Assembly: GCF_964213995.1 (NCBI RefSeq)
Contig: NC_135830.1
Location: 992,001-1,056,000 of the forward strand
Direction of reading: 5' to 3'
DNA length: 64,000 nt
Origin: Mustelus asterias
Taxonomy: Eukaryota
In this document: positions 1-55,555 of the stretch, in pieces
Numbering within the stretch: position 1 is the stretch's first letter
Layout of the letters: each line of letters opens with the position of its first letter
Position numbers and translations under genes: made by a program
Notes under the pieces: generated by a model
What the model saw: only the letters and a program-made list of their open reading frames with translations
Told to the model about the DNA's origin: nothing
Database searches by the model: none

Positions 1-1539
1 AACCAACATCGAAATCAAAATCAAATAATTCTGGCAGGATCAAATTGCTGTATGTGAGAGCACATTAACTGCAGCATCTGTCTGAGTGAATCAGTGCCGA
101 TATTCGAAAGATATTTCGTGGTCAGTATAACATTTGTGGCGTTATGAGGACGTGAAAGCGGGTTAAAATATTTTATTTTTTCTTCGTTTACCTACTTAAT
201 CCATTGTCGTGTATTACTTGCCATTTATATCATTAGCCTAACAAACTTTACAACACTTGAATTGTTTTCATAAATACAGGCCACATATTTTTGTGTAAGG
301 TGACATGATTGACTCTCGGCACTGAGTTGAGAAAGTTGATATCGTTGACACATCACAGAATACTTGCACTAACAACTACAATTGTATTCCCACTGACCCG
401 TTCCTATTCATCATTGCAGTTGCCTGGAATTTCCTGCCATTGAAAAGTTCAGCGTTATTGTGGGACATAACTGAGACGCATCTTACAGGGTGTAAATTCA
501 TGCTGTCATCAGGAAATTGCGTTTTGCCTCCAACAGCTTGAGAAAAACTGCATGCTGCAGATACTAGTGGACCTGCATTTCGAGAACATTAATTGAGTTC
601 ACAGAAATTTCCAAGCTGCTTAATGTATTTTACATATTTATGGTCAATGCTAGCAGGTACAGGTTCAACTCAGAATTGTACCTTCGTTTGGCTGCGCATT
701 GGCAATCTGAATTTGAGATTTATTTTAAGACGTATCTCAATTTTCTCTGGCAAATTGCAACGGGGCATTGAGTGTTTCCCAAGGTGTTTGATAAGATGTT
801 CAATTTCATTTAAAAAAATAACCGTAACAGGTATGAAACTCTCTGGATAGTTACTGTGCACATTTATCTACTGATGAATAGCTGTGAGGGAACAGATAGG
901 GAGCTGGTTCCCGTACTGTAAAGCTACGTTTTGATAATCTGTTGATAACTACTGACAATCTGGTTACTAACAGAATTAAGAAAATATCAAGTCAACATTA
1001 GGGCAGTCAGCTCCATATCTACCCCCCAGCCGCCAGTTATCGGCAGAATATTCGGGTATGGACAATGTGTTAAAGGAATTGAGATGATAATGAACATTTA
1101 AATTTGCTTGTCATCACTTAAATTGATAAGCAAATGATTGTGAATTCAATGTGTCAAACATTTCATTCTTTTTGACTTGGCGGAAAGTGGTTGTTTAAAA
1201 TTATCTGTACCTTGAATTCTTTTTTTCCTCTCATATATGTTTTTACTTCTTATATCAATGTGCGCCTCGGCGACATCATCTGACACCAGAACGAGACTAT
1301 GCACCTGTAAATTGACAACCCTACACTGCCACAAGTAGCGATTGTTCAAATGTCACTGAATTGACCGATTGTCCAACATCCAGCACTGCAATGCAGCAGT
1401 TCCCTTAAAATAAACTTTCGCAATGCAGAGATCATCAGATTCTACTGTAGAACCCACTTTCCGTCTGAGGCCAAACTAGACGGATGACAACAATGGAATA
1501 TTGTTTTGACCACAAGACCACCAAGTATTCATTTCATTT

Positions 1540-2130
1540 CTCAAGACCGTTAGGTTTCACCACAGATACAACGTCCAACTTCACTTTCACCTGAGCACAA
1601 GCGCTGCTGAAATCATCATTCATTAATTTCCTTTCTCTATTCGAATCCATTCTAACCCATCACACTACATTCTCCCTTCTGTGAATTTAAAGCCACCAGA
1701 GCCACTATCGACCCATTTTTAACCATGCTAAGTATCTTTGTCCCATGACTTCGATGCTCGGTAACCTACACCATGCCCAGGACAATCAACACATTTAACT
1801 TAAAATTTGTATCCTTCTCTGCAAATCTTTCCATTACCGCCTCCTCCTAGATCACAGAACACAACTGCTGTTCCACAAACTACAGAGTAACTGTGCACAT
1901 TTATTTGAGTCTGATTTCAATTGCTCCAATATTGGTCGCCTTCCAATTAGCAGCCGTTCCTCATGTTCTGTAATTCTCTCCGGAAGTTTCACCGCCCATC
2001 CACTGGCCATTATCCTTTATGATATTCATTAAATAAAATACAACAAAGTAAAATATGACTGAAAAAACCTACCCCTCTAATCAAACTTTTGTCAATTGGC
2101 AATAATATCACCTTCAGTGTCTCTTGTTAG
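1540..2130 (+). mobile_element. Old L2-like LINE 3' relic
   Basis: Degenerate similarity to related pieces at about 10.8-11.3, 42.25-42.5 and 61.6-61.9 kb; no ORF. Confidence 0.4.
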
Positions 2131-2706
2131 ACTTCAGTGTTTGATGATTCCATGAACTGCTTTGGGGTTGCATTTTTACACTAAAATTACGATATGAATA
2201 CACGTTGTCACTGTTCTTAACACTGTCGACATTTTTAAATAATAATTAAGCAAGTTGCTTTCTTAAAGAAGGATTCCTAGATTAATACGAGAGTACAATA
2301 ATGCGTGTGTATGGCAGATGTTATAAAACGGTGATGCATTAAGTGTTAAGTAAGTCACTAGAATAATCACAATGTCAACACAGAAGGATTAAGATTAAAA
2401 TTATTCTGATGACATCACTGCTTCTTGCAGGGCATTCATTACTCACACAAACTGCTGCTTAATACATCTATTTATCTTCACAAAATGATTTTACAATAGT
2501 GCCTTTTCTTTATCGACCAATACAAATATTGTTTCTGTCCAATTAGGTAATGAGAACTCTTCTTGATTATTAAGAATCTAACATTTTATTCTGATGAACT
2601 GAGATCAAAGATAATTTGTCAAATAGCTGAATTCAGTTTCTACCCTGGCCATTGCCTGAGGCATATTTAGACTGTCGCAACATCGACGTTGCACATTACT
2701 CTTGCC

Positions 2707-4310
2707 CATAAGACCATAAGACATAGGAACAGAATTAGGCCACTCGCAACATCGAGACTGCTCCACCATTCAATCAAGTTGATGTTTTTCTCATCCCCAT
2801 TCTCCTACCTTTTCCCCATAGCCTCTGATCCCCTTTTTAATCAAGAACATATCTATCTCTGTCTTCAAGACACTCAATGACCTGGCCTCCACAGGCTTCT
2901 GCGGCAAAGAGTTCCACAGATTCACCACTGTCCAGCTGAAGAAATTCCTCCTCATCTCTGTTTCAAAGGATCGTCCCTTTAGTCTGGGATTGTGCTATCT
3001 GGTTCTAGTTTTTCCGACTGATGGAAACATCGTCTCCACGCCCACTTTATCCAGGCCTCACAGTATCCTGTAAGTTTCAATAAGATCCCCTTCATCCTTC
3101 TAAACTCCAACGAGTGCAGACTCAGAGTCCTCAACCGTTCCTCTGATGGAGAAATCCAGCACGAGGGGGCATGGCTTTAAATTGAGGGGGGGTAGTTATA
3201 GAACCGATGTCAGGGGTAGGTTCTTTACCCAGAGGGTGGTGAGGGATTGGAATGCCCTGCCAGCATCAGTAGTAAATGCGCCTAGTTTGGGGGCGTTTAA
3301 GAGATCCGTAGATAGGTTCATGGACGAAAAGAAATTGGTTTAGGTTGGAGGGTCACAGTTTTTTTTTAACTGGTCGGTGCAACATCGTGGGCCGAAGGGC
3401 CTGTTCTGCGCTGTAATGTTCTATGTTCTATGTTCATACGACAAGCTCTTCATTCCAGGGATCATTCTTGTGAACCTCCTCTGGAACCTTTCCAATGCAA
3501 GCACATCCTTCCTTGGAAACGGGGCCCAAAACACCTCACAATGCTCCAAATGGCGCCTGCCCAGAGCCGTGTGCAGCCTCAGAACTACATCCCTGCTTTT
3601 GTATTTTAGCCCTCTCGACATGAAAGCTAACACTGCATTTGCCTTTCTAACTGCCGACTGAACCTTCACGTTAACCTTAAGAGAATGTTGAACAAGGACT
3701 CCCAAGTCCCTTTGTGCTTCTGATTTCCTAAGCATTTCCCCATATGGAAAATAGTCTATGCCTCCATTCCTGCTTCTAAAGTGCAGAACCTGACACTTTT
3801 CCACGTTGTTTTCCATCTGCCATTTCTTTACCCATTCTCCTAGTCTGTCCAATTCCTTCTGCAGCCACCCCCCCCCCCCCGCCTCCACCCCCCCCCCCCC
3901 CCCGTCTCCCTGCTTCCTCAATACTACCTTCCCTCCAGATATCTTTGTATCATCTGCCAACTTAGCAATAGTTCCTTCAATTTCTTCTTCCAAATCGTTA
4001 ATGCATATTGTGAAATGTTGTGGTCCCAGCACCACCCCTAAGGCACACCACTAGTCACCGGCTGCCATTCTGAAAAAGAGCCCTTCATCCCCACTCTCTG
4101 TCTTCTGACAGTCAGCCAATCCTCTATCCATGCCAGTCTCTTACCCTTAACACGATGAGCTCTTAACTTATTTCACATTCTCCTATGTGGCACTTTGTCA
4201 AAGGCCTTCTGGAAATCTAAATATATCACGTCCACTGGTCCTCCTTTTTCTAACTTCCTTGTTACCTCCTCAAAGAAATCTAAAGGATTTGTCAGACATG
4301 ACCTCCCCTT
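2707..4310 (-). mobile_element. CR1-clade LINE, 5'-truncated, interrupted by a nested CR1 piece
   Basis: RT C-terminal peptide (KLADDTK, LEHCEVFWAPF) in ORF 3421..4035; (CATAAGAC)n tail at 2707. Confidence 0.9.
3145..3435 (+). mobile_element. Nested CR1 3' fragment
   Basis: TRGHGFKL...FFTQRVVRDWNALP peptide; (TTCTATG)n tail. Confidence 0.88.
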
Positions 4311-5039
4311 GTCTGAGAGTCAACCTGATGTGCTCGACATCCCAAAGACCATCCATTCCTTTCACTAAATAATCTCATGCCTCCGTTCCTGGATAAGGTC
4401 ATATACAACTGAACATTTACTGCACGGCGTTGCTACCTGTAGATTCCATGATAAAAATATGCCCACACCCAGCCCGGCAAACCTCCCACCTTCACTATTC
4501 TCATGCACTCGTGACCTCTGGAATATTGCTAATTACAACTGTTCTGCTATTTGCAGCCATTTAAGAGGCATTGTAAAATAAACAGCAGCAAAAGTCGTAC
4601 AATCATTTCATGGTGAACAAAACGAGGCAAATCTGTGATTCTGCCTATGCACAGGGTCTTATTGAAAGCCATCTATTGAATCTGGCTGTCTCATTTTCAC
4701 ACAAAACTTGTCAGCATTCTGCCTCGAGATTGTTGTAAAATTTGTCTTCAGAAATTAATTCAGCATCCACTTCTATCAGGCCTCCTGGCAGTTCATCTCT
4801 TATAAAAAATCAAGACATCAACTAACTCCTCAAACCCACATGTGACGCATTACCACTTTTTAAAATCGACATCCAGTCAAAGGTTTCTCCTTAATTACTC
4901 ATCCAAAGCCGTCTTTGTTAACCTTGGCTACACCTTGGCTAACATGCCCTGTTATAACCAGAACAATTAAAATTGATCTTAACTAATATGCCGTAGCACA
5001 CACACTATTTTAGAATTTTGGGACACACTATTGAAGGGA

Positions 5040-5376
5040 CATAGAAATCATAGAAACCCTACAGTGTAGAAAGAGGCCATTCGGCCCATCGAGTCTACAC
5101 CGACCACAATCCCACCCAGGCCCTACCCCCATATCCCTACATATTTACCCGCTAATCCCTCTAACCTACCCATCTCAAGACACTAAGGGGCAATTTTAGC
5201 ACGGCCAATCAACCTAACCCGCACATCTTTGGACTGTGGGAGGAAACCGGAGCACCCGGAGGAAACCCACGCAGACACGAGGAGAATGTGCAAACTCCAC
5301 ACAGACAGTGACCCAAGCCGGGAATCGAACCCAGGTCCCTGGAGCAGTGAAGCAGCCGTGCTAAGCACTGTGCTAC
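5040..5376 (-). mobile_element. HE1-like tRNA-derived SINE
   Basis: tRNA-like A/B-box head, V-SINE-type core (CACTGTCTGTGTGGAGTTTGCAC), CR1-like tail. Confidence 0.9.
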
Positions 5377-5941
5377 TCACTTTCTCGCCCAACAGCTTCC
5401 CTTGATGTTTCGAACGACTGCTCCACCTCTGCAGTGAAACAATACACATGAGTGATGTTTCTAATCCAACCTGCACCTCACCGTTTGCTTTGAAAGTTAA
5501 AAGGTAAAATGTACATCTGTGCTGATGGCACAAAACGGGCAGATTGGTACGGACCAGCTGTCATACAATCATTCATTGCAATCAGTGGAAGATAACGTGC
5601 CGAACCCATGCCCAAGTTTTGCACTGCCACGCGAGGACGGTTTTCCCGACCTCAGACTCCAAATCAACAAATTGCTTCTTCAAGTAAAGTAAGGAAATAG
5701 ACAAAATAACATCTGAAGTGTAAGAAAATACTTCGCTGTCACAATGAGACTTAAAACAATTCTTGGTGTATTTTAGAATATGAAAGGACAAAGAGAAAGC
5801 TTTTGAATATTGTGTTCAATTTCAGTGTCTACTTTTTGGTTTAATCAGCGAGTTATACACACAGAGAACCCATATTAGCTGAAGGAGACAAGTTTCGATG
5901 TAAACAGGATTCTCACAGAATTACACAATGCGTGGTTAAAT

Positions 5942-6290
5942 GGGGCGGCACGGTAGCACAGTGGTTAGCACTGCTGCTTCACAGCTCCAGGGACCTGGGT
6001 TCGATTCCCGGCTTGGGTCACTGTCTGTGTGGAGTTTGCACATTCTCCTTGTGTCTGCGTGGGTTTCCTCCGGGTACTCCGGTTTCCTCCCACAGTCCAA
6101 AGATGTGCGGGTTAGGTTGATTGGCCATGCTAAAAATTGCCCTTCGTGTCCTGAGATGCGTAGGTTGGAGGGATTAGTGGGTAAATATGTAGGGATATGG
6201 GGGTAGGGCTTGGGTGGGATTGTGGTCGGTGCAGACTCGATGGGCCGAATGGCCTCTTTCAGTACTGTAGGGTTTCTATGATTTCTATGA
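5942..6290 (+). mobile_element. HE1-like tRNA-derived SINE
   Basis: GGGGCGGCACGGTAGCACAGTGG head, GGTTCGATTCC B box, TTTCTATGA tail; inverted near-copy of 5040-5376. Confidence 0.92.
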
Positions 6291-7166
6291 TCTGTCTCGT
6301 TTGTTGTGCCACACCAGCAGATGGCGAATCAAGAGTCAGATTTCCTCAATGACTGATCTACTGTCCATTTGCTTTCCACTGGTATTCACAAAACTGAGAC
6401 TCGACTGCTCTGCTGTCGCTTACTTTTGGTTGGAAATTAAATCCAAGTCAATGGGAGACGGGATAGGAGCTGAGGGTGTTGAGACGGGGGAGGGTGCAAT
6501 AAACTTGTCAGATAGGTTGCTGAATAACTAGTGCACTCCTGGCGCTTTTGGAATAGTCCATGACCAGTCAGTCCCTTTCGAGATCATTTGCTTTTTCCCT
6601 TTGAGCCAAATTCTGAAATGTACAGAAGTTATTGGCCAACATGTTTTCAGAGTTCGATCAGACATTAATGTTACTTTCCATGTCATGGAGAACGAGAAGT
6701 GTTTTATGGGTCATATAAAACCATAACCAGCATTTTATGAAACAATACATTACATTTATTACGTGATTGTAGAGATCACTCCTCACCACAATATTGCATC
6801 GATTTGTTTTGGGTTAGAACTACTATCTATTCATTTTACAAGTTACCAGAATGATCAGGATGAAAATTGTATGATTGGTTCCGTTTTAACTCTAAAAACC
6901 AGCATCACCTTCCCAATGAAGTCTTTAAAGTGTTTGTTGACAGCTAAGTTACCCATAGAAATCTAATATTTTCAGTCACAATGTTCTGTTTAAAATAGTT
7001 CTAAATGCCAGCCAAATCAAATGAGACAGTCAATTAAGTCGGGATCTGAAAAATAACTATGAATGTTACTTCATCTCTTCAGGCAATATTAATGAAAACA
7101 TTAGTTCTTCTTCACCTTTATGCACAAAAAAATCTTATTGAAGAAGTAGCAAGAAACGTCACTTAC

Positions 7167-7210
7167 CAGAGTTCACAGTCAGCACGGTACCAGCCCCATC
7201 ATAGTAGTAA
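7167..7210 (-). CDS. IgNAR: IgNAR J segment (YYYDGAGTVLTVNS)
   Basis: VNAR FR4 motif DGAGTVLTVN, GTAAGT donor at 7166, preceded by a 23-RSS. Confidence 0.96.
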
Positions 7211-7249
7211 CACAGTCACTGAGCATCCATTCAGCCCATGTCACAAACT
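7211..7249 (+). other. J 5' recombination signal sequence (23-bp spacer)
   Basis: CACAGTC-23-TCACAAACT abutting J. Confidence 0.88.
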
Positions 7250-7566
7250 GCCAATGAAGCAAAATCCGCGAATCAAAGTCCTGAAGCAACATTGTTACAC
7301 AGATCTTTTGTATTTGTTGCATTTATCAATGTATCTAAATTCTTGATCTGTTTCCATCCGTGGAGAGATTTTCCATGAGCTATGTGTACACTTGTAATAC
7401 CTTACAAGAAAGACAATCCAGTGATTCAATATTAAGGACCATAATGGTGCATTTAAAAAAAACCAATTCCATCGGGAATGGATTTCTAATGCTGTGCAAT
7501 TAGAGGTGTAAGAAACAGTACAATACAGCCTGGTTCGCCAGTTGTAAAGGAAATAACTGTTGTGGA

Positions 7567-7634
7567 GGTTTTTGTTGTGGCCCACATCACCGTGTCACCG
7601 TAGCTGCACATCACTTCACACCAGCACAATAAAT
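7567..7634 (-). other. IgNAR D4 (core 7595-7606 CAGCTACGGTGA) with 12/12 RSSs
   Basis: CACGGTG-12-ACAAAAACC (minus, 7567-7594, near consensus); CACATCA-12-ACAATAAAT (plus, 7607-7634, weaker). Confidence 0.85.
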
Positions 7635-7950
7635 CCATCATTCAAACCTTCACAGAAAATGCTTCAATCATTCCAAAATATCGATTGGAAATTGTCCAAA
7701 TCGTTCCCTTCATAATGGGATCCGAGCAGCTGTCTATAGCTCCTAAGGACTTGTCCAAATCATGGAGAAACCTCCGTGCTATGTTATAAATGCGATTCAA
7801 ATGTTTATAAACATAATTGCCAAAATAAACAGAGAAAATGTTTCAATGCATCAATCGGTGTCTGAGGAGGACAGCAGTTGTTTAACCATGAGCTACCGTA
7901 GCCACTCAGAAAGTAAAATCTGTTTGTTTTGTCTTCAGGAGTGTAGGGCT

Positions 7951-8030
7951 AGTTTTTGTATTAAGAGAATCTATGATTCATTAATGTGGCCCATAGCAGC
8001 CACACAGCCGCAGAGATCAGTGCAAAAACG
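7951..8030 (-). other. IgNAR D3 (core 7989-8002 TGGCTGCTATGGGC) with 5' 12-RSS and 3' 22-RSS
   Basis: CACAGCC-12-GCAAAAACG (plus, 8003-8030); CACATTA-22-ACAAAAACT (minus, 7951-7988). Confidence 0.88.
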
Positions 8031-8227
8031 TGTCATGTATAGTCATCCAAGCCTCTCAGTTCTCGACGTATACTCCGATGTGATTTCACATCACAGTGTT
8101 CTTTTTTTTCATTGTTTTCATTCAACTAAACGTGCTATCCTTCCAAAATATTCATTAATAATTTCCCGCAAAACCAGCTGAGGAACAGTTAACTTGTTCC
8201 AGTGTTAAAGAAAACAAATCTGACGAT

Positions 8228-8304
8228 AGTTTGTGTATGACAGGAACCGTCTTCTCGATTGCTGTGGCAGTACCCACACAGTGGTCTAGCCCCGTTCAAA
8301 AACA
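8228..8304 (-). other. IgNAR D2 (core 8267-8276 TGGGTACTGC) with 5' 12-RSS and 3' 23-RSS
   Basis: CACAGTG-12-TCAAAAACA (plus, 8277-8304); CACAGCA-23-ACACAAACT (minus, 8228-8266). Confidence 0.92.
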
Positions 8305-8495
8305 GCTTCTCTGTTTGTCTGGGTGTTGAATACAGTTGCTGCGCATTCACATTTCAAATGCTGAGGTTTATGATCCTTGAACTATCACCAGATGTTTACA
8401 AATGTCCCCATTTCAAAATAGTATCCATAACTAAAATGCAGTTTCAGCCAGAAGAGCGAATAAAATTGTCTTGTATTCATTGGGAGATCGGAAGA

Positions 8496-8555
8496 TATTT
8501 TTGCAGAACTGGAAGTTCAATCTTATTGTTGTGAGCAATTTCGACCTTTGCAGAA
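8496..8555 (-). pseudogene. Relic V 3' end (FCKGRNC) with orphan 22-spacer RSS
   Basis: TTC TGC AAA GGT CGA AAT TGC T then CACAACA-22-GCAAAAATA; homologous to 8963-9022 at a 467-bp offset. Confidence 0.8.
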
Positions 8556-8693
8556 CATCACAATGTTCCTTTTCTCATTGTTTTCTTTTGAGTAAACGTG
8601 CTAAACCTCCAGGTTATTCATTAATGACTTCCCGCAAGACGAGTTGAGAAACAGTTAAAATGTTCCAATGTTAAAGAAAACAAATCTGAAGAT

Positions 8694-8772
8694 AGTTTGT
8701 GTATGACAGGAACCGTCTTCTCGATTGCTGTGGCTGTATCCGTACACAGTGGTCCAGCCCCGTTCAAAAACA
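8694..8772 (-). other. IgNAR D1 (core 8733-8744 TACGGATACAGC) with 5' 12-RSS and 3' 23-RSS
   Basis: CACAGTG-12-TCAAAAACA (plus strand, 8745-8772); CACAGCA-23-ACACAAACT (minus strand, 8694-8732). Confidence 0.92.
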
Positions 8773-8962
8773 ACTTCTCTGTTTGTCTGGGTGTTGAATA
8801 CAGTTGCTGCGCATTCACATTTCAAATGCTGGGATTTATGATCCTGCAGCTGTCACCAGATATTTACGAATGTCTCCGTTTCAAATAGTTTCCATAACTA
8901 AAATGTAGTTTCAAGCAGAAGAGCGAACAAAATTGTTTTGTCTTCATTGGGAGTTCCGAAGA

Positions 8963-9000
8963 TATTTTTGTATGACTGGTAGTTCAATCTTATTGCTGTG
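8963..9000 (-). other. V 3' recombination signal sequence (22-bp spacer)
   Basis: CACAGCA + 22 nt + ACAAAAATA abutting the V coding end. Confidence 0.92.
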
Positions 9001-9276
9001 GGGAATCATAAGCTTTGCAGTAAAATGTCACACTATCTTGAACTGTTAAGTCCTTGATTTTCAGAGAAAACGACTTGCTTCCCTTGTTGACTGATTCAAC
9101 ATATCGGCCGCCAATGGTGATGCGTTCCCAATCTGTTGAACCAGGATTTTTCCGAAACCAGCTTGTTGCACACAAGCTATAGCTAGCATCCCTTAGGACG
9201 CAGTTGATTGTCAGAGATTCGCCTATTTCTTTCGTTGCCATTCGTGGTGTTTGATCGACATGTGCACTGAAGGCAT
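9001..9276 (-). CDS. IgNAR: IgNAR variable (VNAR) germline V exon, open frame
   Basis: Acceptor ttttctccatacAG; translates [91 protein letters not shown]; C22, W36, C83 and the VNAR-specific CDR2 deletion; directly followed by an RSS. Confidence 0.97.
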
Positions 9277-9416
9277 CTGTATGGAGAAAAGATACGAAAT
9301 GAATTATTTGTCTGAAACAATACAAGAACTTGAAGGCAAAGAATTTTCCACAATGTATGCGCAGCCACCCAATTTTATCCAGTTAACACATATTTTCTCT
9401 TCTGAAAGAAACTTAC

Positions 9417-9459
9417 TTGATAACCACGTTAAAAGGAGCGCAGCCCAGAAAATATGCAT
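9417..9459 (-). CDS. IgNAR: IgNAR leader exon (MHIFWAALLLTWLS + 1 nt, phase 1)
   Basis: ATG at 9459, hydrophobic signal peptide, exon followed by a GTAAGT donor; splices in frame to the V exon. Confidence 0.93.
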
Positions 9460-9551
9460 TGTTTCTTCACAAGCACTGAAAACCTCAGCAGGGCAATCGC
9501 TTGACCTCAACACTGAGTGCTCTGTGTAACGGTGGGCAGCTGAACACCGAC

Positions 9552-9594
9552 TTTATAAACCTCAAGAGACAGGGTGAATTTGCATAGGGCGGAG
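9552..9594 (-). promoter_or_regulatory. IgNAR V promoter: octamer ATGCAAAT (9578-9585), TATAAA (9552-9557), adjacent GC box
   Basis: Exact octamer 20 bp upstream of a TATA box, about 95-125 bp upstream of the leader ATG; GGGCGGAG at 9587-9594. Confidence 0.75.
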
Positions 9595-12429
9595 TGGTCG
9601 AACATTATCAATCTGCATTGCTCAGTCTGTGCGATAGGTTACACTGTGACTATAATATCCATAGTCACACTACTGGAATTTGTATCCAATGAATTTGGAC
9701 AATCCTGTCGAGTTATAGGGAATACTGCCAACATGTTGCGTTTGTTTCCATTCACACTGTTTTTCTTTTCATTTTATTGAAAACAATATTATTTCCTGAG
9801 GTGTGGCAGTTGTTAGCAGGAAAAGCATTCCTCATGAATGTGAAAGTGGTCGTGATTCGCCTATTTAAACGTGTACAGTTCGACTGATGCAGGTGCATAT
9901 AAACTGCTGCGAGGAACAAAGTTCTTATTGATCAGATTAATAATATTATATATATTCAAGCACTGCGAGAGAGCAGTGACAGGGTTCCAAGTCAGGGTGC
10001 TGTGTGGTTTGGAGGAAAATGTTCGAGTCGCATTTTTCCGATCCATTTTTGTTTTTTCCTTCAAAAGAATCAAGGTTTCGTGTTTGGATTGTCCTTTCGA
10101 AGATGTCTCTGCAAATTACTCTACAACAACCTGGCCATACATTAAAGTAAGATCAGTAAAGCCTAAATGTCAGCTTTGAGCAATAAAAAGATGTCACGCA
10201 AACAATATGAATGAAGTAGCAATTATTTAACTCGACTCGAACTGCATTATTGGTAGTAAACCTTTGCTCATTTTTGCTGTGATCGTTTGACCTTCAGTTA
10301 TATATTGCATTGTGCACGTGAATTGTACGAATGCCTTTGATAGATTTCTACCGCAGAATCGGCAAAGATATTAGCCAAAACATAATTACTGAGATTTTCC
10401 AAATTGCTTCACGTTCTGTCTGCTTCGCTGGCTATCTCTGCATGTATTGTCTATTCCTCTTTGACCCTGAAGGTGCATTACGAATGTGCAACAGAGGTCT
10501 AAGTTCGATTGCAAATGTGCAAATAAAATATTCCACAGGAATTTTTCTTGGCCAAGTTCGTCTACTCAATATATCCATATTTTTTAATCAGTCCTGCTCC
10601 AAAAATCCCTTATCTACCGTCAGACTGCGTCCTTGACCATGCGGCAAACTTACATTAAGAATGTGTCTTTGCAACTTCGATGATAAATTAGAATCACTAA
10701 GGAGCTTTCCACTTCATATTTGCAATATCACTAAGGCCCCCTATTTGCAATCCTATAGCAGCTCGAATCACCTATATCTCAGCTCGCCTTGCATGGACCC
10801 CTCATCTTTGCCTCCCTTACCTCTATATTCGATCATTTCAATGTATTCCTATCTCCCACACAATACCCACAGTAAATTGAAGGTGATGTAAGCATCTAAT
10901 GTCCATATCGTAAGACACATAAGGTCCCATTTTCCTCCAACACCTGTAATTTCAATATTGTCATCCTTGTTTACAAAACCCTCTCGTGCTTCAGATTTTT
11001 GTATCGCTGTAATCTCCGCCAAACGCTCAACCATTGATGATGTTCATGCCTCTAATTGTAGTCTCCAGTACACTCCCAGTTTTAATTGCTCCACCACTTG
11101 TGGGACACAAGCCGTCTACCTGTCTGCCGCACGACCTTGCTTTCCCATTTTAATACAGTTGTTATAAGTTGCCTCTTTATCAGGAGCTTCATAAATTGAC
11201 CGAATATTTCCTTATTTGTCTCGATCCCATTATTTCATTCATAAGGAACTGGTGATAGTTGTGGGGACGTTCATTACCTTGAAGGCGCTGGATAAATATT
11301 AGTTGTTTTATGCGGTGGCCCTATGGAGAGTGTTCCAAAAGGTGGGTGTGACACTAAAATTAAAAGCAAATGCATATTGTTAATAATTAGAAGACCAAAG
11401 CTATTTTTTAAATGGAACAATGAGCTATGTTCTTAGATGTCATTCAATCAGAAACTTTGAGATGAGTAAACAAAAAAATATATACTGGGATTGAAACCCT
11501 GAATAGAGCTTTGTTCGGTTTTTGGAATGAGCAGAGGGGCTAAGTGACATTTGGTCCTTTAATATGGTATGGAGATTGAGGCTTCAAACACTGCACAAGA
11601 CATAACTTGTCGTTTTATTCATTCAAAGGTGCACATGTCTCTGGGAAAACCTATATTAATTGTCTCTCCCTCGTTACACATGATAAATTGTCGTGAGCTT
11701 CTTTCTGAGCAGGATGGCTCTGTTAGATAGAACTTAAGTGGAAATTACATTGTTGCGTTTTTGGGGTTTTTTACAAGTGATGTTGGTTCGGAACAGTAGA
11801 TATTGTTCCATAATGGAGAATACACCCTAAAAGGCGTCATTTTTGACATTGTGTATCTTCATGGTCAGCATTGCAGATCGTAGCATTTTAGTTACAGATT
11901 TATTATTTTACAGTTTTTATTTAACTCGAAAGCTGCTATGGTGTTTTTTGAAATTACCTCTCTATTATTAGGCCAGCTGTAAAAGTGTTTGTTCTGCAGC
12001 TTAGTCAAACTGTTGCCACTCTGGTTCACCAGAGATTTCACAAGCAAGAGGCTAAATAAATACGAATGAACAAATAAGTGAATTGTTCAATTTCCTTCAA
12101 AATAAATTTGAGTACGGGTCGATACAATAAGAATGTTTTAAAATATTGAAAAGGAGGAAAGGTTGGATAAAAGAAGAAAAAAAGAGTTTTCAATTGTTAG
12201 GAGGTGTCAGAGGTACATTGTTAAATTTTTATTAAGTTTAGAAAAATTATCGAATGAATTGTCTTCATAAATAAACTTGTGAATCTGTGAAATTTACCAA
12301 CATGTTAAATGTTTCGTTCATGAACAATGTCAACATCCACATTAAGCCTGGGTTGACTGGTGAATCGAAGGCGTGTGGAGTCATCAGCAATCTTTGATCT
12401 CCTGAACAGAACTCAAGAAACAAAATTAT

Positions 12430-15904: not shown

Positions 15905-18532
15905 AAAGATGTTCTTCCTCATCTCAGTCCTGAATGTCCTATTTTTTTTTCTTAGGCTGTGTCCCTTAGTTCTGGACTTCCCAACATGGGAACATTCTTC
16001 CCGCATCTAGCCTGTCCAGTCCCATTTGATTTGATACGTTTCTATTAGATCCCCTCTCATTCTTCAAAATTCCAGGTACAAGTCCAGTCGATCCAGACTT
16101 TCTTCATATGTCAGTCCTGCCATTTGGGGAATCGGTCTGATGAACCTTCGCTGGACTCCCTCATTGGAAGCATGTCCTTCCTCAGTCTAGGAGATCGAAA
16201 CTGCACACAATACTCAAGATGTGTCCTAACCAAGGCTCTGTATAACTGCAGCAAGTTATCCCTACTCCTATACTCAAATCCTCTTGCTATGAAAGCCAGC
16301 ATGCCATTAGCTTTCCTCACTGCCTGCTGTGCCTGCATGCGAACCTTCAGCGACTGTTCTATCATGAAACCCAGGTCGTGTGGCACTTCCTTTTTTTTCT
16401 AAACTACCACCATTCAGATAATAATCTTCCCTTTTTTGCCACCAGAGAGAATAACCTCTCAGTCATCCACATTATATTGCATTTACCCACTCAGTCAGCC
16501 TGCCCAAGTCACCCTGCAGCATCTTACCATCCTCCTCCTAGCAAACACATAGTCACCCAGCTTGGTGTATTCTGCAAATTTGGAGACATTGCATTGAATT
16601 TCTTCATCCAAATCATTAGTGTATATTGTGAAAAGTTGGGATCCCAGCACTGAACCATGTGGTGTATGAGTCAATACCTGCCGTTCTGAAAAGGAGCCGT
16701 TTATTCCCACTCTCTTTTTCGTGTCTGGCAACCAGTTCTCTATCCACATCAATACATTATCCCCAATACTATGAGCTTTAGTTTTGCTCACTAATCTGTT
16801 GTTTGGGACCTTGTCAAAAGTATTTTGGAAATCCCAATACACAACACCCACTGGTTCACCCTTGTACACTCTGCAAGTCACGTCCTTAAAAAAAACACAC
16901 ACAAGATTTGTCAAGCACGATTTTCCTCGTGTGAATCTACGCTGACTTGGAGGCAACCTATCACCGCTTTCCAAATGCTCAGTTGTTACATCCTTAATAA
17001 CTGACACCAGAATTTTCCCCACCGCCGATGTCGATTATTCCCTTTTCTCTCTCCCACCTCTTTGAAACAGTGGGGCTGCATTAACTACCCTCCAATCCAT
17101 TCGAACTCTTCCAGAATCTATAGAATGCTGGAAAATGATCATCAGTGCGTTCACTATTTCTAGGGCCACGTCAATAAGTACTCTGAGATTCAAAACATCA
17201 GGCCCTGGGATCTTTCAGGTTTTAATTCCAGAAAATTCCAAAATACAATTTCCTGACTAATATCGATTTCCTTCAACTCCTCCTTCATGCTAAACTCCAT
17301 ATCCCTTAGTATTTATGGAAGTTTTTTTGTGTCCTCCTCATTAATACACCTCCAAAGTATTTGTTCAGATGTTCTATCATCTCTCTGTTGCCCATTGTGA
17401 ATTCACTTGATTCTAACTAAGGGACCACCTTTGTCTCCAGCAGCCTATTTTTTTCTCTTCGCATATCTATAGAAACTATTGCAGTCAGTTTTTATGTTTT
17501 CCCCAAGCATGCTCTCCTCTTCTATTTTCCCCTTCTGAAGTAAACCTTTTGTCCTGCTCTGCTGAATTTTTAAGTTCTCCCAGTGCTCAGCTTTGCTGTT
17601 TTGGCTGGCCAATTATTATGCCTCTTCTTTTGCTTTAAGACTATCTCTGATTTCCCTTGTTATCCATGGTTGAACCACCTTCCCCGTTTTCCTCATACGC
17701 CAGAGAGGGATGTACAGTTGTTGAAGGTGATTAATGTGTTATTAAAATCTCTTTCATTTCCTGTCCACTATTAACCCCTTCAGTACCATTTGCAAGCTTA
17801 TCCTAGCCAATACACGTCTCATACCATAAATGTTAGCTTTCCTTAATTTCAGGACCCTCGTCTCAGACTTAATAGTTCCGCCCGCCATCTTAATGAAGCA
17901 TTCTACCATATTGTGGTCACTCTTTCCCAAAGATCTCGCACCACAAGATTGCTAATTAACCATCTCTCGTTACACAATACCCAGCCCACGATGGCCTGCT
18001 CTCTAGTTGGTTCCTCGATATATTGGTCGTGAAAACCATCCCTATACTTTTCAGGAAATCCTCCTCCACCGCTTTGTTACCAGTCTGTTCAGCCCAATCA
18101 ATATGCAGGTTGAAATCACACAACAACTGCTGTACCATTATTGCACACAGCTCTAACTTCCTACTTGAGGCCATCCTAAACCTCACTACTACTGTTTGAT
18201 GGCCTGTGCACAACTCCCACTAACGTTTTTTTTGTCCTTTGGCGTTCCGCGTGTCCACCCATGCAGATTCAACATTGTCCAGGCAAATGTCCTTCTTGAC
18301 TATTGCGTCAATCTCCTCTTTAACGAGCAAAGCTACCCCACCCTCTCCCTTTCCATCTATCTTTCCTGAATATAGAATACCCCTGGATGTTGAGTTCCCG
18401 TCATTCTTCACTCTGGAGCCAAGCCTGTCATTGCTATTACATCATATCCGTTCATGACTGCCTGTACAGTTAATTCATTCACCTTATTACAAGTGTTATT
18501 ACACTTTAGTTATGCCTTATTACAAGGCATAA

Positions 18533-21844: not shown

Positions 21845-22790
21845 ACAAAGAACAAAGAAGAACAAAGAACAGTACAGCACAGGAAACAGGCCCTTCGGCC
21901 CTCCAAGCCTGTGCCGCTCCTTGGTCCAACTAGACCAATCGTTTGTATCCCTCCATTCCCAGGCTGCTCATGTGACTATCCAGGTAAGTCTTAAACGATG
22001 TCAGCGTGCCTGCCTCCACCACCCTACTTGGCAGCGCATTCCAGGCCCCCACCACCCTCTGTGTAAAAAACGTCCCTCTGATGTCTGAGTTATACTTCGC
22101 CCCTCTCACCTTGAGCCCGTGACCCCTCGTGATCGTCACCTCCGACCTGGGAAAAAGCTTCCCACTGTTCACCCTATCTATACCCTTCATAATCTTGTAC
22201 ACCTCTATTAGATCTCCCCTCATTCTCCGTCTTTCCAAGGAGAACAACCCCAGTCTACCCAATCTCTCCTCATAGCTAAGACCCTCCATACCAGGCAACA
22301 TCCTGCTAAACCTTCTCTGCACTCTCTCCAATGCCTCCACGTCCTTCTGGTAGTGCGGCGACCAGAACTGGACACAGTACTCCAAATGTGGCCTAACCAG
22401 CGTTCTATACAGCTGCATCATCAGACTCCAGCTTTTATACTCTATACCCCGTCCTATAAAGGCAAGCATACCATATGCCTTCTTCACCACCTTCTCCACC
22501 TGTGTTGCCACCTTCAAGGATTTGTGGACTTGCACACCTAGGTCCCTCTGTGTTTCTATACTCCTGATGACTCTGCCATTTATTGTATAACTCCTCCCTA
22601 CATTATTTCTTCCAAAATGCATCACTTCGCATTTATCCGGATTAAACTCCATCTGCCACCTCTCAGTCCAATTTTCCAGCCTATCTATATCCTGCTGTAT
22701 TGCCCGACAATGCTCTTCGCTATCCGCAATTCCAGCCATCTTCGTGTCATCCGCAAACTTGCTGATAACACCAGTTACACCTTCTTCCAA
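21845..22790 (-). mobile_element. Young 5'-truncated CR1 with open RT C-terminus
   Basis: ORF 21930..22943 from LEEGVTGVISKFADDTK to the stop is uninterrupted; (ACAAAGA)n tail. Confidence 0.93.
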
Positions 22791-25295
22791 CCCTACTGGG
22801 ACATACGAGGTGTAAAAGCTGGAGATGGCTAGATTTCTTTCAGACACAGTGACACTATCTCTGGCAAAATGCAAAATACGTTTGCACACTGTTATGGGGA
22901 AATATAGCGAAGCTACTTCATATGTGTAAGTCAGTAATCGCAATAATCGTAGTAATCAGACTTTATTTCCCACATCACTATTAATAATTACTACAAATCG
23001 CCTTGAAGGAGGAAAGGGAGTAGAGATCTGGAGAGGTGTTGGAAAAAAGTTACAGACATTAACCCCTGCTAATTGAAGGTCCAATTATGAAGTGATTAAA
23101 ATTGACGATGCACAAAAGGAGAATGGACGGGTTGGAACAACTTAGAGAGATAGAGTTTTTTTTCATGCTGCTGGCCCTGAGTAATTGGCGACCAATACAA
23201 TGGCTCGCAGCTCTCGAAGGCATGACTACTTCCCGAATGCAGGTGGAAATCTGCAACTGAACCAATTGGCAAACCGCTGCCAGTTAAATCAATTGGATTA
23301 TTTCGAAGTTTACTTTGCTGGACCTGACCACGGCTGGATTACTCTGCACCATTCTGGTCTCCGTTCCTCAGGAAATCTTTACGTGTCCTATTTTGAAACA
23401 AAGGATTGCAAGCAAGATTTTTCTGATGAGATGAATGTGCTATGAGGACAAATGGAGCCTACACTTCCTGAAGGTTTAAAAATGAAGGATGTTTGCATTG
23501 AAAGGCAAGAAAAAGAAATCTCTTGGGAGGACAAACAAGGTAAATGGTTTAATATTTCTCTTGTTTGCAGTTTGGTGCATCAGAAATTGAGGGTGACGAT
23601 CACTTATGCTCAGGCTTTTAGGATTGTGAAGTAAGAAATCTTAACTCCATTGCACATCACAGCGTGTTTCTACCACAGAGACAAAGATCACCACTTGGTT
23701 GCTAATCCTTGTTTCGTTGCTGTTGCTGGTTAAAATCCTGGAACTCCCTTTCTAACATCACTCTTTTCTTGCAATGCTATGCTGCTCGACCAGTGCAGTG
23801 GGAAGGGAAAATCCCGTCAGATGTGTTCCAAATCCAGGTGGACTGCATCTCCACATCACCGTTCTATAAGGCAGCTCGTCACTACCTCCTCAATGGCAGC
23901 AATGAATCATTAATCAAAGCTGGCATATCCAGACACGCCCACATCCGATGACCGACTTTTTTTTCCAAAAAGGTTGATTGAATTAGTTTTCGGAAGGAGA
24001 AAAATTCAGGAACTAATGGAACCAAATGATGGGTGCAGCTGAAGTACCTGATTTGTAGAACCATTTCAATAAACCGCTTCTTCATGCTTGCGTAGTAGCT
24101 TCTCATCCTTACGAAATTGTATACCAGAAATTGATGAAATTTTCAGTTATCTGCTTAACCATCTTGCCCCATTTCATACATTAGTTTCTGCATGTCTATG
24201 TTCAGGTCCCTCTGAGCCTGCATTCCATTCAGAACAGTATGCTTAATTATTTTTGTGGTCCCTCATTCTTCCTTCCAAAAACTGACACTTCAAAGCTCTC
24301 TGCAGTGAATTCCTCCCGCCACACGCCCGGACATTCCAAACAATATTGCGAGGTACTCTTCAGCTTGCGTGCTGTCCGGCTAAAAATGTCACCATATTTT
24401 GTTGTTGCACAATCTATCTATTTCAAAATTCAGTCTAATTAAATCAAATTCAAAGTCCTTAGTAAATGCCAAGGGAAACAGTCCGTCTGGAATCTGTTAC
24501 TTGGAAAACCTACTGTATACCTTCCTCCAGTGATAATCATCACTGATGTTAGATTGAACGTCTCTATACAAAGAATAACCAGTCACTGGAATGACCTTTT
24601 AGAAATTTAAAACCAATTCTCTTATTGGTTCTGAGATTGCTAAGGATAAGTGAATCATGAGAACTAATTATCTCATTTATTGTTCATGGCTGAAGTTTAT
24701 CCAAATTATATAAACCGTGGCATTAATAATAACATTGAAACGATTGGGACGTCCATGCCCATACTGGGCTCTATCCTCATTTTTCTCGCTACAGATTGAC
24801 AAGGAATCTAGCTTTCGTGCACTTCCCATTCCGTCTGTGGCCACCTTATTGAGGGACGGAAGCTTTCCTCATTGCTAAGGTATGACCACCGGACGTCTCA
24901 ATGCAAAATTTACTTATTTTCTCTAAGGTTTGGCCACTCCACTTGTATTCATGTCCCACAGAGTGTCACAATTATTAAATTCCTCAACAAAATAATCGGG
25001 TTGTACCTGAGAACCTGAAAATGAATCATGTCCAAGCACAACCAGAATTTGTACTCATTGCAGGAATCATAATACAGTTGTCAAGTGTCAGAGATTTTTA
25101 TTTTTGATTGATGAATGTTGTTTCAGGAACGTGAGTCAATGAATGGAAGTCCAGCATTATCTCTGAGCAGAAGTGCATTGACTTGAATATTTTCTGTACG
25201 GGTATTTCTTATTCTTCAGCTGTTATTTATTTATTTAAAAATGCTGATAGCTGGTGGTGTGATGTGAAATGTCATGCGATAGTAAAAGATGCCAG

Positions 25296-30263: not shown

Positions 30264-31457
30264 GTGACAGCCATGGGGACCAAATTTGCACCTCAATATG
30301 CCAACATCTTCATGCACAGGTTCGAACAAGACTTCTTCACCGCACGGGACCTTCAACCGATGCTATACACTAGATACATCGATGACATTTTCTTCCTTTG
30401 GACTCATGGTGAACAATCACTGAAACAACTCTATGATGACATCAACAAGTTCCATCCCACCATCAGACTCACCATAGACTACTCTCCGGAATCGGTTGCA
30501 TTCTTGGACACACGCATCTCCATTAAGGACGGTCACCTCAGCACCTCACTGTACCGCAAGCCCACGGATAACCTCACGATGCTCCACGTCTCCAGCTTCC
30601 ACCCTAAACACGTTAAAGAAGCCATCCCCTACGGACAAGCCCTCCGTATACACAGGATCTGCTCGGATGAGGAGGATTGCAACAGATACCTCCAGACGCT
30701 GAAAGATGCCCTCATAAGAACAGGATATGGTGCTCGACTCATTGATCAACAGTTCCAACGCGCCACAGCGAAAAACCGCACCGACCTCCTCAGAAGACAA
30801 ACACGGGACACAGTGGACAGAGTACCCTTCGTTGTCCAGTACTTCCCCGGAGCGGAGAAGCTACGGCATCTCCTCCGGAGCCTTCAACATGTCATTGATG
30901 AAGACGAACATCTCACCAAGGCCATTCCCACACCCCCACTTCTTGCCTTCAAACAACCGCACAACCTCAAACAGACCATTGTCCGCAGCAAACTACCCAG
31001 CCTTCAGGAGAACAGTGACCATGACACCACACAACCCTGCCACAGCAACCTCTGCAAGACGTGCCGGATCATCGACACAGATGCCATCATCTCACGCGAG
31101 AACACCATCCACCAGGTACACGGTACATACTCTTGCAACTCAGCCAACGTTGTCTACCTGATACGCTGCAAGAAAGGATGTCCCGAGGCATGGTACATTG
31201 GGGAAACTATGCAGACGCTGCGACAACGGATGAATGAACACCGCTTGACAATCACCAGGCAAGACTGTTCTCTTCCTGTTGGGGAGCACTTCAGCGGTCA
31301 CGGGCATTCGGCCTCTGATATTCGGGTAAGCGTTCTCCAAGGCGGCCTTCGCGACACACGACGGCGCAGAGTCGCTGAGCAGAAACTGATAGCCAAGTTC
31401 CGCACACACGAGGACAGCCTCAACCGGGATATTGGGTTCATGGCACACTATTTGTAA
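30264..31457 (+). CDS. Penelope-like RT (C-terminal half) plus GIY-YIG endonuclease, 5'-truncated
   Basis: 397-aa open frame; the start is an artefact of the inversion junction. Confidence 0.88.
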   Translation: MTAMGTKFAPQYANIFMHRFEQDFFTARDLQPMLYTRYIDDIFFLWTHGEQSLKQLYDDINKFHPTIRLTIDYSPESVAFLDTRISIKDGHLSTSLYRKPTDNLTMLHVSSFHPKHVKEAIPYGQALRIHRICSDEEDCNRYLQTLKDALIRTGYGARLIDQQFQRATAKNRTDLLRRQTRDTVDRVPFVVQYFPGAEKLRHLLRSLQHVIDEDEHLTKAIPTPPLLAFKQPHNLKQTIVRSKLPSLQENSDHDTTQPCHSNLCKTCRIIDTDAIISRENTIHQVHGTYSCNSANVVYLIRCKKGCPEAWYIGETMQTLRQRMNEHRLTITRQDCSLPVGEHFSGHGHSASDIRVSVLQGGLRDTRRRRVAEQKLIAKFRTHEDSLNRDIGFMAHYL

Positions 31458-31811: not shown

Positions 31812-32128
31812 CATCATAGAATCCCTACAGTTCAGAAGGAGGCCATTCGGCCCCACAACTCTGCGCCGACCACAATGCCACCCAGGACTCATTCCCCAAA
31901 ACATTTACCCCATTAATCACCCTGGCACTCGGTTCAACTGAGCATGGCCAATCATCCTAACCCGCACGTTGTTGCACTGTGGGAGGAAACTGGAGCACCC
32001 GCAGGAAAACCACGCAGACACAGGGAAAAGGTGCAAAATCGACACAGACCGTGACCAAGGCTGGAATTGAAACTTGGTTTCTGGCGCTGTGAGGCAGCAG
32101 TGCCAACCACTCTGTCAGTGTGCCGCCC
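31812..32128 (-). mobile_element. HE1-related SINE
   Basis: Diverged match to 5040-5376. Confidence 0.85.
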
Positions 32129-33720: not shown

Positions 33721-35572
33721 ATAAGAACATAAGAAATAGGAGCAGGAGTAGGCCATCTAGCCCCTCAAGCCTGCCCGCCATTCAATAAGATCATGGCTGA
33801 TCTGAAGTGGATCAGTTCCACTTACCTGCCTGATCCCTATAACCCCTAATGCCCTTACCGATCAGGAATCCATCTATCCATGATTTAAACATATTGAACG
33901 AGGTAGCCTCCACCACTTCAGTGGGCAGAGAATTCCAGAGATTCACCACCCTCTGAGAGAAGAAGTTCCTCCTCAACTCTGACCTAAACTGACCCCCCTT
34001 TATTTTGAGGCTGTGCCCTCTAGTTCCAGTTTCCTTTCTAAGTGGAAAGAATCTCTCCATCTCTACCCTATCCAGCCCCTTCATTATCTTATAGGTCTCT
34101 ATAAGATCCCCCCTCAGCCTTCTAAATTCCAATGAGTACAAATCCAATCTGCTCAGTCTCTCCTCATAATCAACACCCCTCATCTTGGGTATCAACCTGG
34201 TGAACCTTCTCTGCACTCCCTCCAAGGCCAATATATCCTTCCGCAAATAAGGGGACCAATACTGTACACAGTACTCCAGCTGCGGCCTCACCAATGCCCT
34301 GTACAGATGCAGCAAGACATCTCTGCTTTTATATTCTATCCCCCTTGCGATATAGGCCAACATCCCATTTGCCTTCTTGATCACCTGTTGCACCTGCAGA
34401 CTGGGTTTTTGCGTCTCATGCACAAGGATCCCCAGGTCCCTCTGCACAGCAGCATGTTGTAATTTCTTTCCATTTAGATAATAATCCGATTTGATATTAT
34501 TTCTTCCAAAGTGAATAACCTCGCATTTGTTAACATTATACTCCATCTGCCAGATCCTCGCCCACTCACTCAGCCTGTCCAAATCTCTCTGCAGACCTTC
34601 TACACCCTCCACACGATTCACCTTTCCACTTATCTTTGTGTCATCTGCAAACTTTGTTACCCTCCACTCAGTCCCCTCCTCCAGATCGTCTATATAAATG
34701 GTAAATAGTTGAGGCCCCAGTACCGATCCCTGCGGCACGCCACTAGTCACCATCCGCCAACCAGAAAAGCACCCATTTATTCCGACTCTCTGCTTCCTGT
34801 CGGCTAGCCAATCCCCAATCCACACTAACACCCTGCCCCCAACTCCGTGTGACCCAATCGTCTTCAGCAACCTTTTGTGAGGCACCTTATCAAACTCCTT
34901 TTGGAAATCCAAAAACACCGCATACATCAGTTCCCCTCCGTCAACCGCACTAGTCACATCTTCATAAAAATCCAACAAGTTCGTCAAGCACGACTTTCCC
35001 CTCATGAATCCATGCTGCGTCTGCTTAATCGAACCATTCTTATCCAGATGGTCTGCTATTTCTTCTTTAATGATGGATTCCAGCATTTTCCCAACTACAG
35101 ACGTTAAGCTAACTGGCCTGTAGTTAACCGCCTTTTGTCTATTTCCTTTTTTAAACAGCGGCATAACATTAGCCATTTTTGAATCCGCCGGCACTACCCC
35201 AGAATCCAGCGAATTTTGATAAATAGCCACGAACGCATCCGCTATTACCTCTGACATTTCTTTCAGTACCCTGGGATGCATTCCATCCGGGCCCGGGGAC
35301 TTGTCCACCTTCAGTCCCGTTAGTCTACCAAGCACTGCCTCCCTGGTAACATTAATTGTATTGAGTACCTCTCCTCCTACCAACCCTCTATCGTTAATAT
35401 TCGGTAAACTATTTGTGTCTTCCACCGTGAAGACCGACACAAAAAACTTATTTAAAGTTTCAGCCATTTCCTCATTTCCCACTATTAAATCCCCCCTCTC
35501 GTACTCCAAGGGTCCAACATTCACTCTTGCCACTCTATTCCTTTTTATATATTTGTAAAAGCTTTTACTATC
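33721..35572 (-). mobile_element. Young CR1 with complete RT domain, no endonuclease (5'-truncated)
   Basis: 573-aa ORF 33812..35533 with [24 protein letters not shown] and FADD. Confidence 0.95.
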
Positions 35573-46134: not shown

Positions 46135-46880
46135 CAGGCTATACTTGTATTGGAGACAGTACAACAAAGGTTCACTCGATACTTCTCTGGGATGAGGGCG
46201 TTGTCCTGTGATGCCTGGCTGACTAAATTTGACCGAAATTCTCTGGTGGTTTAGCGGAATGACAGGAGATCTCATGGAAACCTAAGCACTACTGACTGAG
46301 TGCAGCAATGCTGCCTCACAGTGTCAGGGACACAGGTTCAATTCTGGCCTCGGGACTGTGTGGAGTTTGTTTGTTCTCCCTGTGTCGACGTGGCTTTCCT
46401 TCCTGGTGATTCTCTTTCCTCCCACAGTCCAAAGATGTGTGGGTTCAATGGATTGGCCATGCTAACTGGTCCTTCAGTGTCAGAGGGATTAGCAAGTTAA
46501 ATGCAAGGTGTTACGGGGATATGGCGTCAGTGGGATTGTTGTCACTGCATGCTCGGTGGGCCGAATGGCTTTCTTCTGTACTGCAGGGATTCTATGATTC
46601 CATGAGTTTGATAGAGTGGATGCTGAGAGATTATTTTCCCTGTTTGGGGAATCCAAAACACGAGGGCACAATCTCAGGGTAAGGCACCAATTATTTATGA
46701 CCGGGATGAGAAGACATTGCTTCACTCAAAGTGATCGTGAATCTTCCGAATTCTCTATCCCAGAGGGTCGTAGACACTCCATCATTGAACTCATTTCAGC
46801 CTGGGTTAGACAGATTTCTGATCTGTCCAGGAATGAAAGGGTGCAGGAATATGGAATTGGAACAAATGCTCACCCACAAA
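46135..46880 (+). mobile_element. Old CR1 fragment with nested SINE (about 46300-46603)
   Basis: ESKTRGHNL peptide in ORF 46616..46942; SINE core GTGTGGAGTTTG. Confidence 0.75.
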
Positions 46881-54848: not shown

Positions 54849-55239
54849 TATCTAATTTGTCTCAGAAAAACTGAGTTGGCCTTCCTTAATTACTGCACAA
54901 CTTCCAGGTAATTACTTTTATTCTGAATTTTCGGTTCAAATGCTTTCCCAATCCTAGGCTAAACTGACTGGTCTGTCGGTGCTGGGCTAATCGTTCCATT
55001 TAAGATTAGTGACAATTGAATCTTAATACCAGGAGATGTGAGGAAATTGAGGGGAGTGATAAAACTGTAACTATTTTTAAAAACACTTAACACCAATAAA
55101 TAATATTAATTAAATTCAAGACAGAAAATACAAATAACAAATTCATCTCTGAAGTAAATCATACAAATTAAAATAACCTCATGCTTAAAAACTGAAATAA
55201 ATACAGTAAAAGCTGGAAACACTCATCAAATTTGGACGA

Positions 55240-55555
55240 ATCCTTTTCTCTGTATGGACAAGGCTTCAACGAATCAATTGGGCTGTCCAAACACAAACAC
55301 AATCATGCAAAGGAGAGACTGCAGAAATGTGGAGACTGTGGGAATTGATTCAATTACCCATCCCAGTCAGAAATTCATCGGCGTACTCACACTGGGGAGA
55401 GGTCTGCTCAATGTGTGGGAAGGGATTCACTCCCTCCACCTACTTGCTGACATGCCAGCGGGTTCACATTGGGGAGATGCCATTCGCCTGCTCATTGTGT
55501 GGGAAGGCATTCATTGGGTCATCCCCACCTCCTGAGACGCCAGTGAGTTGACATG
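55240..55555 (+). pseudogene. C2H2 zinc-finger gene relic (about 4 degenerate fingers)
   Basis: [41 protein letters not shown], with a stop and frameshifts. Confidence 0.85.

Follow-up and report, generated by a model that had tools for sequence, protein, structure and literature searches.

The 64,000-nt stretch of Mustelus asterias DNA analysed here (contig NC_135830.1, positions 992,001 to 1,056,000; in the following called the window, to whose positions all coordinates refer) holds, on its minus strand, a gene cluster for the heavy chain of IgNAR. This immunoglobulin (Ig) uses a single small domain to bind antigen, and its primary diversity lies almost entirely in complementarity-determining region 3 (CDR3), which is made from the D segments and their junctions. 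We consider it probable that the cluster is intact and unrearranged, that its variable part consists of V, four D segments and J with five joins possible, and that the fourth D arose by tandem duplication. The spacers of the recombination signal sequences (RSSs) along the cluster are V(22), 12-D1-23, 12-D2-23, 12-D3-22, 12-D4-12 and 23-J. All signals lie in uniform orientation and follow the order typical of IgNAR, that is V(23-type), serial 12-D-23, 12-D-12 and 23-J, but four RSS-flanked D segments were counted where IgNAR is expected to have exactly three. A previous interpretation made from the letters alone, here called the sequence-only reading, had proposed an IgNAR cluster with intact V, J and splice sites, with four D segments and with spacers in a 12/23-compatible order, and each of these points was recovered in our analysis.

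The assignment to IgNAR rests on the V exon, which was queried alone, and on J, which was assessed by translation. The closest solved structure to V is 7spo_C, a VNAR (the variable domain of IgNAR) from Squalus (E 5.7e-39), and of the 32 matches listed from the Protein Data Bank at an E of 1e-10 or below, 30 belong to VNARs or to variable domains of shark antigen receptors. A search of a protein collection gave 16 matches, all 14 named ones being VNARs, with a Squalus acanthias VNAR at 73% identity on top, and in Pfam the exon matches V-set (E 2e-7). The framework-4 motif of J, DGAGTVLTVN, is the same as in the Squalus VNARs among the database matches. The V exon is free of stops, leader and J are open, and GTAAGT donors are present; leader, leader intron and an octamer-bearing promoter of the Ig type all precede V, octamer and TATAAA being motifs known from Ig promoters. 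Besides the two canonical cysteines, the translated V exon has one in CDR1 (SYSLCATSW). Such an extra CDR1 cysteine marks type II VNARs, in which it bridges CDR1 to a cysteine in CDR3. Cysteine-coding frames exist in D2 (GYC) and D3 (GCYG), and there are none in D1 or D4.

The RSSs were located by a consensus scan of the whole window, which returned a dense run of RSS-like sites exactly over the V-J interval. The CAC start is kept by all ten heptamers of the cluster. The weakest signal is the 5' RSS of D4, which falls below the threshold of that scan and agrees with the consensus in 4/7 heptamer and 6/9 nonamer positions. It is itself part of a tandem repeat of 26 nt (7609-7660), in which it forms the second copy; the upstream copy has a nonamer-like start and lacks a CAC/GTG heptamer end. 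As a control for chance, structures made of an RSS, a core of 5-20 nt and a further RSS were counted under thresholds relaxed to admit D4. Five occur in the 64-kb window, and four of these are the D segments of the cluster, within 1.2 kb, whereas 100 dinucleotide-preserving shuffles held on average 0.56 such structures per 64 kb (maximum 4; at least one in 39 of the 100). The fifth structure in the window (32103-32107), with weak signals around a core of 5 nt, is most likely due to chance. All elements of the cluster are compiled in Table 1.

Table 1. Elements of the IgNAR cluster, in the order in which the gene is read
Element	Position	Strand	Sequence and remarks	Basis
Promoter	9552..9585	-	octamer ATGCAAAT (9585-9578) and TATAAA (9557-9552)	read from sequence
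Leader exon	9417..9459	-	43 nt; begins with ATG (9459); GTAAGT donor next	
Leader intron	9277..9416	-	140 nt; pyrimidine tract and CAG end; acceptor ...TTTTCTCCATACAG	
V exon	9001..9276	-	276 nt; VNAR type; 91 full codons, stop-free	protein and structure searches, translation
Duplication unit A	8555..9032	-	V end, V RSS, spacer DNA, D1 with both RSSs, tail	
V RSS	8963..9000	-	CACAGCA / 22 / ACAAAAATA	
D1 5' 12-RSS	8745..8772	-	TGTTTTTGA / 12 / CACTGTG	
D1 core	8733..8744	-	TACGGATACAGC; frames YGYS, TDT, RIQ; no Cys codon	
D1 3' 23-RSS	8694..8732	-	CACAGCA / 23 / ACACAAACT	
Duplication unit B	8088..8562	-	relic V end, relic V RSS, spacer DNA, D2 with both RSSs, tail	
Relic V 3' end and decayed V RSS, between D1 and D2	8496..8562	-	V end 8562-8534; RSS CACAACA / 22 / GCAAAAATA (8533-8496)	
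D2 5' 12-RSS	8277..8304	-	differs from that of D1 at one spacer position	
D2 core	8267..8276	-	TGGGTACTGC; frames WVL, GYC, GT; Cys in one frame	
D2 3' 23-RSS	8228..8266	-	39/39 identical to that of D1	
D3 5' 12-RSS	8003..8030	-	CGTTTTTGC / 12 / GGCTGTG	
D3 core	7989..8002	-	TGGCTGCTATGGGC; frames WLLW, GCYG, AAMG	
D3 3' RSS	7951..7988	-	CACATTA / 22 / ACAAAAACT	
D4 5' 12-RSS	7607..7634	-	weak; ATTTATTGT / 12 / TGATGTG	
D4 core	7595..7606	-	CAGCTACGGTGA; frames QLR*, SYG, ATV	
D4 3' 12-RSS	7567..7594	-	strong; CACGGTG / 12 / ACAAAAACC; nonamer 9/9	
J 23-RSS	7211..7249	-	AGTTTGTGA / 23 / GACTGTG	
J segment	7167..7210	-	YYYDGAGTVLTVNS; GTAAGT donor at 7166	translation

D1 and D2 are located within a tandem duplication of 467 bp, as the sequence-only reading had suggested. 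When the two units are aligned, 414 of the 480 columns are identical and 66 differ; in a repeat search the same region appeared as three co-linear families with a spacing of 466-468 and an identity of 85–92%, while Tandem Repeats Finder gave no report of a 467-bp repeat. The duplicated unit would extend from the last 30 bases of V to a point about 180 bases past the first D, and would include the V signal as well as this D. Since its start lies within V, a relic V end and a decayed V signal are found between D1 and D2. Compared with their genuine counterparts, the relic V-end stretch is identical in 21/32 and the relic V RSS in 33/38 positions. The units overlap by 8 bases (8555-8562), TGTGATGT, as compared with TGTGACAT in V, and this overlap looks like a microhomology at which the tandem duplication occurred. 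We also considered older serial duplications as the source of D3 and D4. The flanks of D3 and D4, however, show no similarity above shuffles to the unit of D1 and D2, and the sole high score among the flanks (D2 versus D3) is an artefact of overlapping region limits. Thus, D3 and D4 should be older than the duplicated unit or unrelated to it in origin.

The divergence between the two units is unevenly distributed. Spacers included, the RSS pairs of D1 and D2 are identical in 66/67 positions, compared with 340/401 in the remainder of the unit (one-sided Fisher test, p = 4.3e-4). The coding cores between them agree in only 8/12 positions, with two substitutions and a 2-nt indel, and so differ significantly from their own RSSs (p = 0.0015), and the relic V RSS, too, has decayed more than the RSSs of the D segments (p = 0.023). 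The tract of high identity reaches past the D signals, by 63 nt upstream (60/63) and by 44 nt downstream (40/44); the upstream part, directly 5' of the two 5' nonamers (8773-8835 and 8305-8367), lies far above the 85% of the rest. A conversion tract was considered as the source of the RSS identity and rejected, since it would have homogenised the cores as well, and these have diverged. The conservation of the RSSs is therefore read as selection. Statistically, and judged from this one pair of sequences, selection appears to have kept D1 and D2 both recombination-competent while their coding cores diverged. We infer that the two segments differ in role.

Independent support comes from four public sequencing runs, which were compared in the form of Logan contigs, a format in which depth and absence mean little. 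In run X1, from the same organism, a contig covering 8465-8610 (record 5) spans the unit junction at 8555-8562 with 0 differences. In run X5, from a related organism (organism B), a 225-nt contig covering 8474-8698 (record 25) spans the same junction with 16 differences and no gaps, and a further contig of 622 nt (record 21) leads from the D4 5' signal via D3 to the D2 3' nonamer. As the junction is bridged in both X1 and X5, the duplication is not an assembly artefact and predates the split of the two organisms. X1 and X3 moreover contain a second variant with a likeness of about 93% (records 3, 6, 15 and 17). It extends over parts of the two units, with 19 differences and 2 gaps over 8856-9122 and with 15 differences and no gap over 8301-8482. 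It could be a divergent allele.

The contigs of run X3 depart from the window sequence at the J donor, with a loose end at 7166. In reverse complement, that is on the gene strand, the 30 letters of this loose end read LIPPVISLF in one frame, which is in frame with J if position 7166, a G common to the intron and the next exon, is counted in the fitted stretch. We read this continuation past the J donor as the next exon, C1, as a proline-rich stretch of this kind presumably opens C1 of IgNAR. X3 was taken as RNA because its contigs attain depths of about 40 with a total of only 67 million letters, and because the loose end falls on the donor. Two extra letters directly at the beginning of the J coding end (7209) are present at a depth of 87/160 in X3 and 7/20 in X5, which indicates a second germline variant of J that differs at the coding flank.

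Rearrangement follows the 12/23 rule, by which the RAG recombinase joins signals with a 12-spacer to signals with a 23-spacer. In the cluster described here RAG would join the segments by deletion. The V signal (22) and the 3' signals of D1, D2 and D3 (23, 23 and 22) could each pair with the 12-signal 5' of any D that follows, and the 23-signal of J would pair solely with the 3' 12-signal of D4. As J can be reached only from D4, D4 would be obligatory and D1 to D3 optional; that D1 to D3 may be skipped in any combination, as the sequence-only reading had it, indeed follows from the order of the spacers. Full use of the four D segments would mean five joins per CDR3, one more than in the described clusters. 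Without trimming, the germline input to CDR3 consists of 16 nt of V downstream of its cysteine codon, 48 nt from the D segments and 13 nt of J up to the GAG motif. These add up to about 25 codons, three to four of them from D1 or D2. An extra D would in addition bring one further junction for trimming and N addition. Five joins and longer CDR3 loops are likely, as far as the germline sequence allows a prediction, and we infer that all four D segments are used. The relic V signal, more speculatively, might act as a decoy partner of the D2 5' signal.

A more far-reaching interpretation is also conceivable, although we would give it slightly less than an even chance. It holds that this is the standard IgNAR gene of the lineage, with four working D segments in at least two clusters here and in the related species; selection would have maintained these since a duplication long ago, and CDR3 would be assembled by five RAG joins. 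A cysteine able to bridge to that of CDR1 could come from D2 but not from D1, and the choice between D1 and D2, or their use together, would set both the length of the loop and its disulfide type.

How does this compare with known systems? Like the canonical IgNAR cluster (V-D1-D2-D3-J-C1 to C5; nurse shark and white-spotted bamboo shark), the present one has one V of the VNAR type, a split leader, short D segments with two RSSs each and one J, is predicted to rearrange within the cluster and has 12-spacers on both sides of its last D, with 12/23 for the earlier ones. It differs in having four D segments and up to five joins instead of three and four, respectively, and in the relic V end and decayed RSS between D1 and D2. 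Spacer variants of 22 nt are known also from bamboo shark IgNAR (PMC8692893). That the number of joins can change heritably is known from the nurse shark type III IgNAR (PMC4622739), in which D1 and D2 are joined in the germline. The direction there is the opposite one: RAG acting in the germline removed a join, so that three joins and a restricted CDR3 remain, whereas here a join was gained by duplication.

The sequence-only reading had set the cluster against described ones of the form V-D-D-D-J with four joins, and the literature agrees with this description. Three D segments and four rearrangements per IgNAR cluster are given in the reviews PMC5192425, PMC4622739, PMC4279169 and PMC12907318 (February 2026), and in the bamboo-shark genome complete IgNAR clusters consist of one V, three D, one J and five C, some of them with pre-joined D segments (PMC8692893). 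The available text of the nurse-shark locus paper does not treat the D segments (PMC11641339), and that of four further papers adds nothing on their number (PMC12227049, PMC11767079, PMC10522858, PMC10532743). The present locus is a real, well-formed IgNAR cluster with one D above the described kind; it belongs to a known system and is not a separate kind.

Joining of D to D in series is found outside IgNAR, too. In the T-cell receptor (TCR) delta locus more than two D segments can enter one CDR3 via 12/23-compatible D-to-D joins; this is, however, a translocon T-cell receptor locus and not an immunoglobulin minicluster. The IgM heavy-chain cluster of sharks has the form V-D1-D2-J, with two D segments. 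It has serial D-to-D joining in common with what is predicted for the cluster described here, and differs from it by having just two D segments, a conventional VH and pairing with a light chain. The organisation in clusters and the rearrangement within one cluster, which are further points of agreement, are described in PMC5192425.

Several observations weigh against an intact cluster with four usable D segments. The 5' RSS of D4 is weak (4/7 and 6/9), though every productive rearrangement requires it. No constant exons are found in the window: an Ig-domain pattern applied to stop-to-stop open reading frames (ORFs) of at least 60 amino acids fits V alone, 12 further ORFs that match a loose Ig pattern being not Ig-like by eye, and the 30-letter loose end of X3 was not found in the window even with up to 3 mismatches allowed. 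X3 was taken as RNA though it comes without an RNA record. At 90% likeness, organism B has no contig over 8729-8910, a stretch which comprises D1 together with the flank upstream of it. X1 is possibly the sample behind the assembly, and in none of the four runs do the contigs hold rearranged joints, which Logan contigs show poorly. Finally, with regard to the question raised by the sequence-only reading whether four-D IgNAR clusters are already documented, neither an IgNAR nor any other shark cluster with four D segments was found in open-access papers and preprints, but most primary germline IgNAR papers and supplements (e.g. the figures of PMC8692893) lie outside that search.

An alternative is a cluster which has four D segments but works like one with three, D1 and D2 being alternatives, so that most transcripts would contain three D segments or fewer and the length of CDR3 would not be raised. 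The signals of D1 and D2 are so alike that V should join D2 directly as readily as D1, the decayed V signal between them could divert some rearrangements of D2, and D1-D2 joins are among the joints that the contigs do not display. We nevertheless regard this as unlikely. The 3' 23-signal of D1 and the 5' 12-signal of D2 form a permitted pair at a distance of 456 bp, the other intervals being 256-384 bp; both sets of signals have been kept; and all D segments of a cluster are described as being joined in one VD1D2D3J assembly (PMC5192425, PMC4622739). Quite improbable, in our opinion, is a cluster that looks intact yet yields no productive rearrangement, for example due to the weakness of the D4 5' signal, with the unrearranged gene as the only source of transcripts. 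The contigs of X3 lie on unrearranged spacer DNA between V and J, as expected of sterile transcripts, but V, leader, splice sites and J are all open, CAC is kept in 10/10 heptamers, the conservation of the RSSs after the duplication argues for use, and the duplication is common to a related organism.

Tandem repeats are a classic site of assembly errors, and the possible identity of X1 with the source sample of the assembly would lessen its value as an independent witness for the second 467-bp unit. That this unit is an artefact is very improbable all the same: an artefactual copy is expected to be near-identical, whereas the units differ at 66 of 480 columns, and the junction is bridged not only in X1 but also in X5, a different organism. 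Hardly any credence can be given to the idea that the locus is not IgNAR at all but a NAR-TCR cassette, an arrangement that places a NAR-like V and a J belonging to it ahead of a leaderless TCR delta V. On the minus strand no further V-like or Ig-like ORF exists in the 7.1 kb below J (<7167), and J continues into the sequence reading LIPPVISLF. An intact IgNAR cluster with four D segments, the fourth of them derived from a tandem duplication, is therefore the reading that we prefer.

To our knowledge the number of D segments in IgNAR has been treated as fixed at three. If the fourth D works, this number can evolve by simple tandem duplication, and the five RAG joins would exceed the number in any IgNAR cluster described in the accessible parts of the literature reviewed here. 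With its conserved signals, its diverged D cores and one relic signal in decay, the locus would then be a dated natural experiment that bears on which features of an RSS are visible to selection, as well as a test case for the handling of five closely spaced joins and a decoy signal by RAG. The longer and more varied loops predicted for such a cluster would be of interest to builders of VNAR libraries.

The DNA near the cluster contains abundant remains of retroelements. Within the 7.1 kb below J there are a reverse-transcriptase fragment and an inverted repeat (5040-5376 / 5953-6289), placed in the J-to-C1 intron, whose arms of 337 nt are 94% complementary and have 576 nt between them. There is overlap between these arms and ORFs belonging to a repeat, further copies of which are present in the window, for instance near 46410. 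An Rfam scan of positions 1-12000 at the gathering threshold returned no family. Pfam matches to reverse transcriptase were obtained in the ORFs 30264-31454, 33815-35533, 16498-17022, 21933-22943 and 3424-4035, one of which also has a weak GIY-YIG match. The ORF 55210-55548 displays, by eye, repeats that resemble C2H2 zinc fingers.

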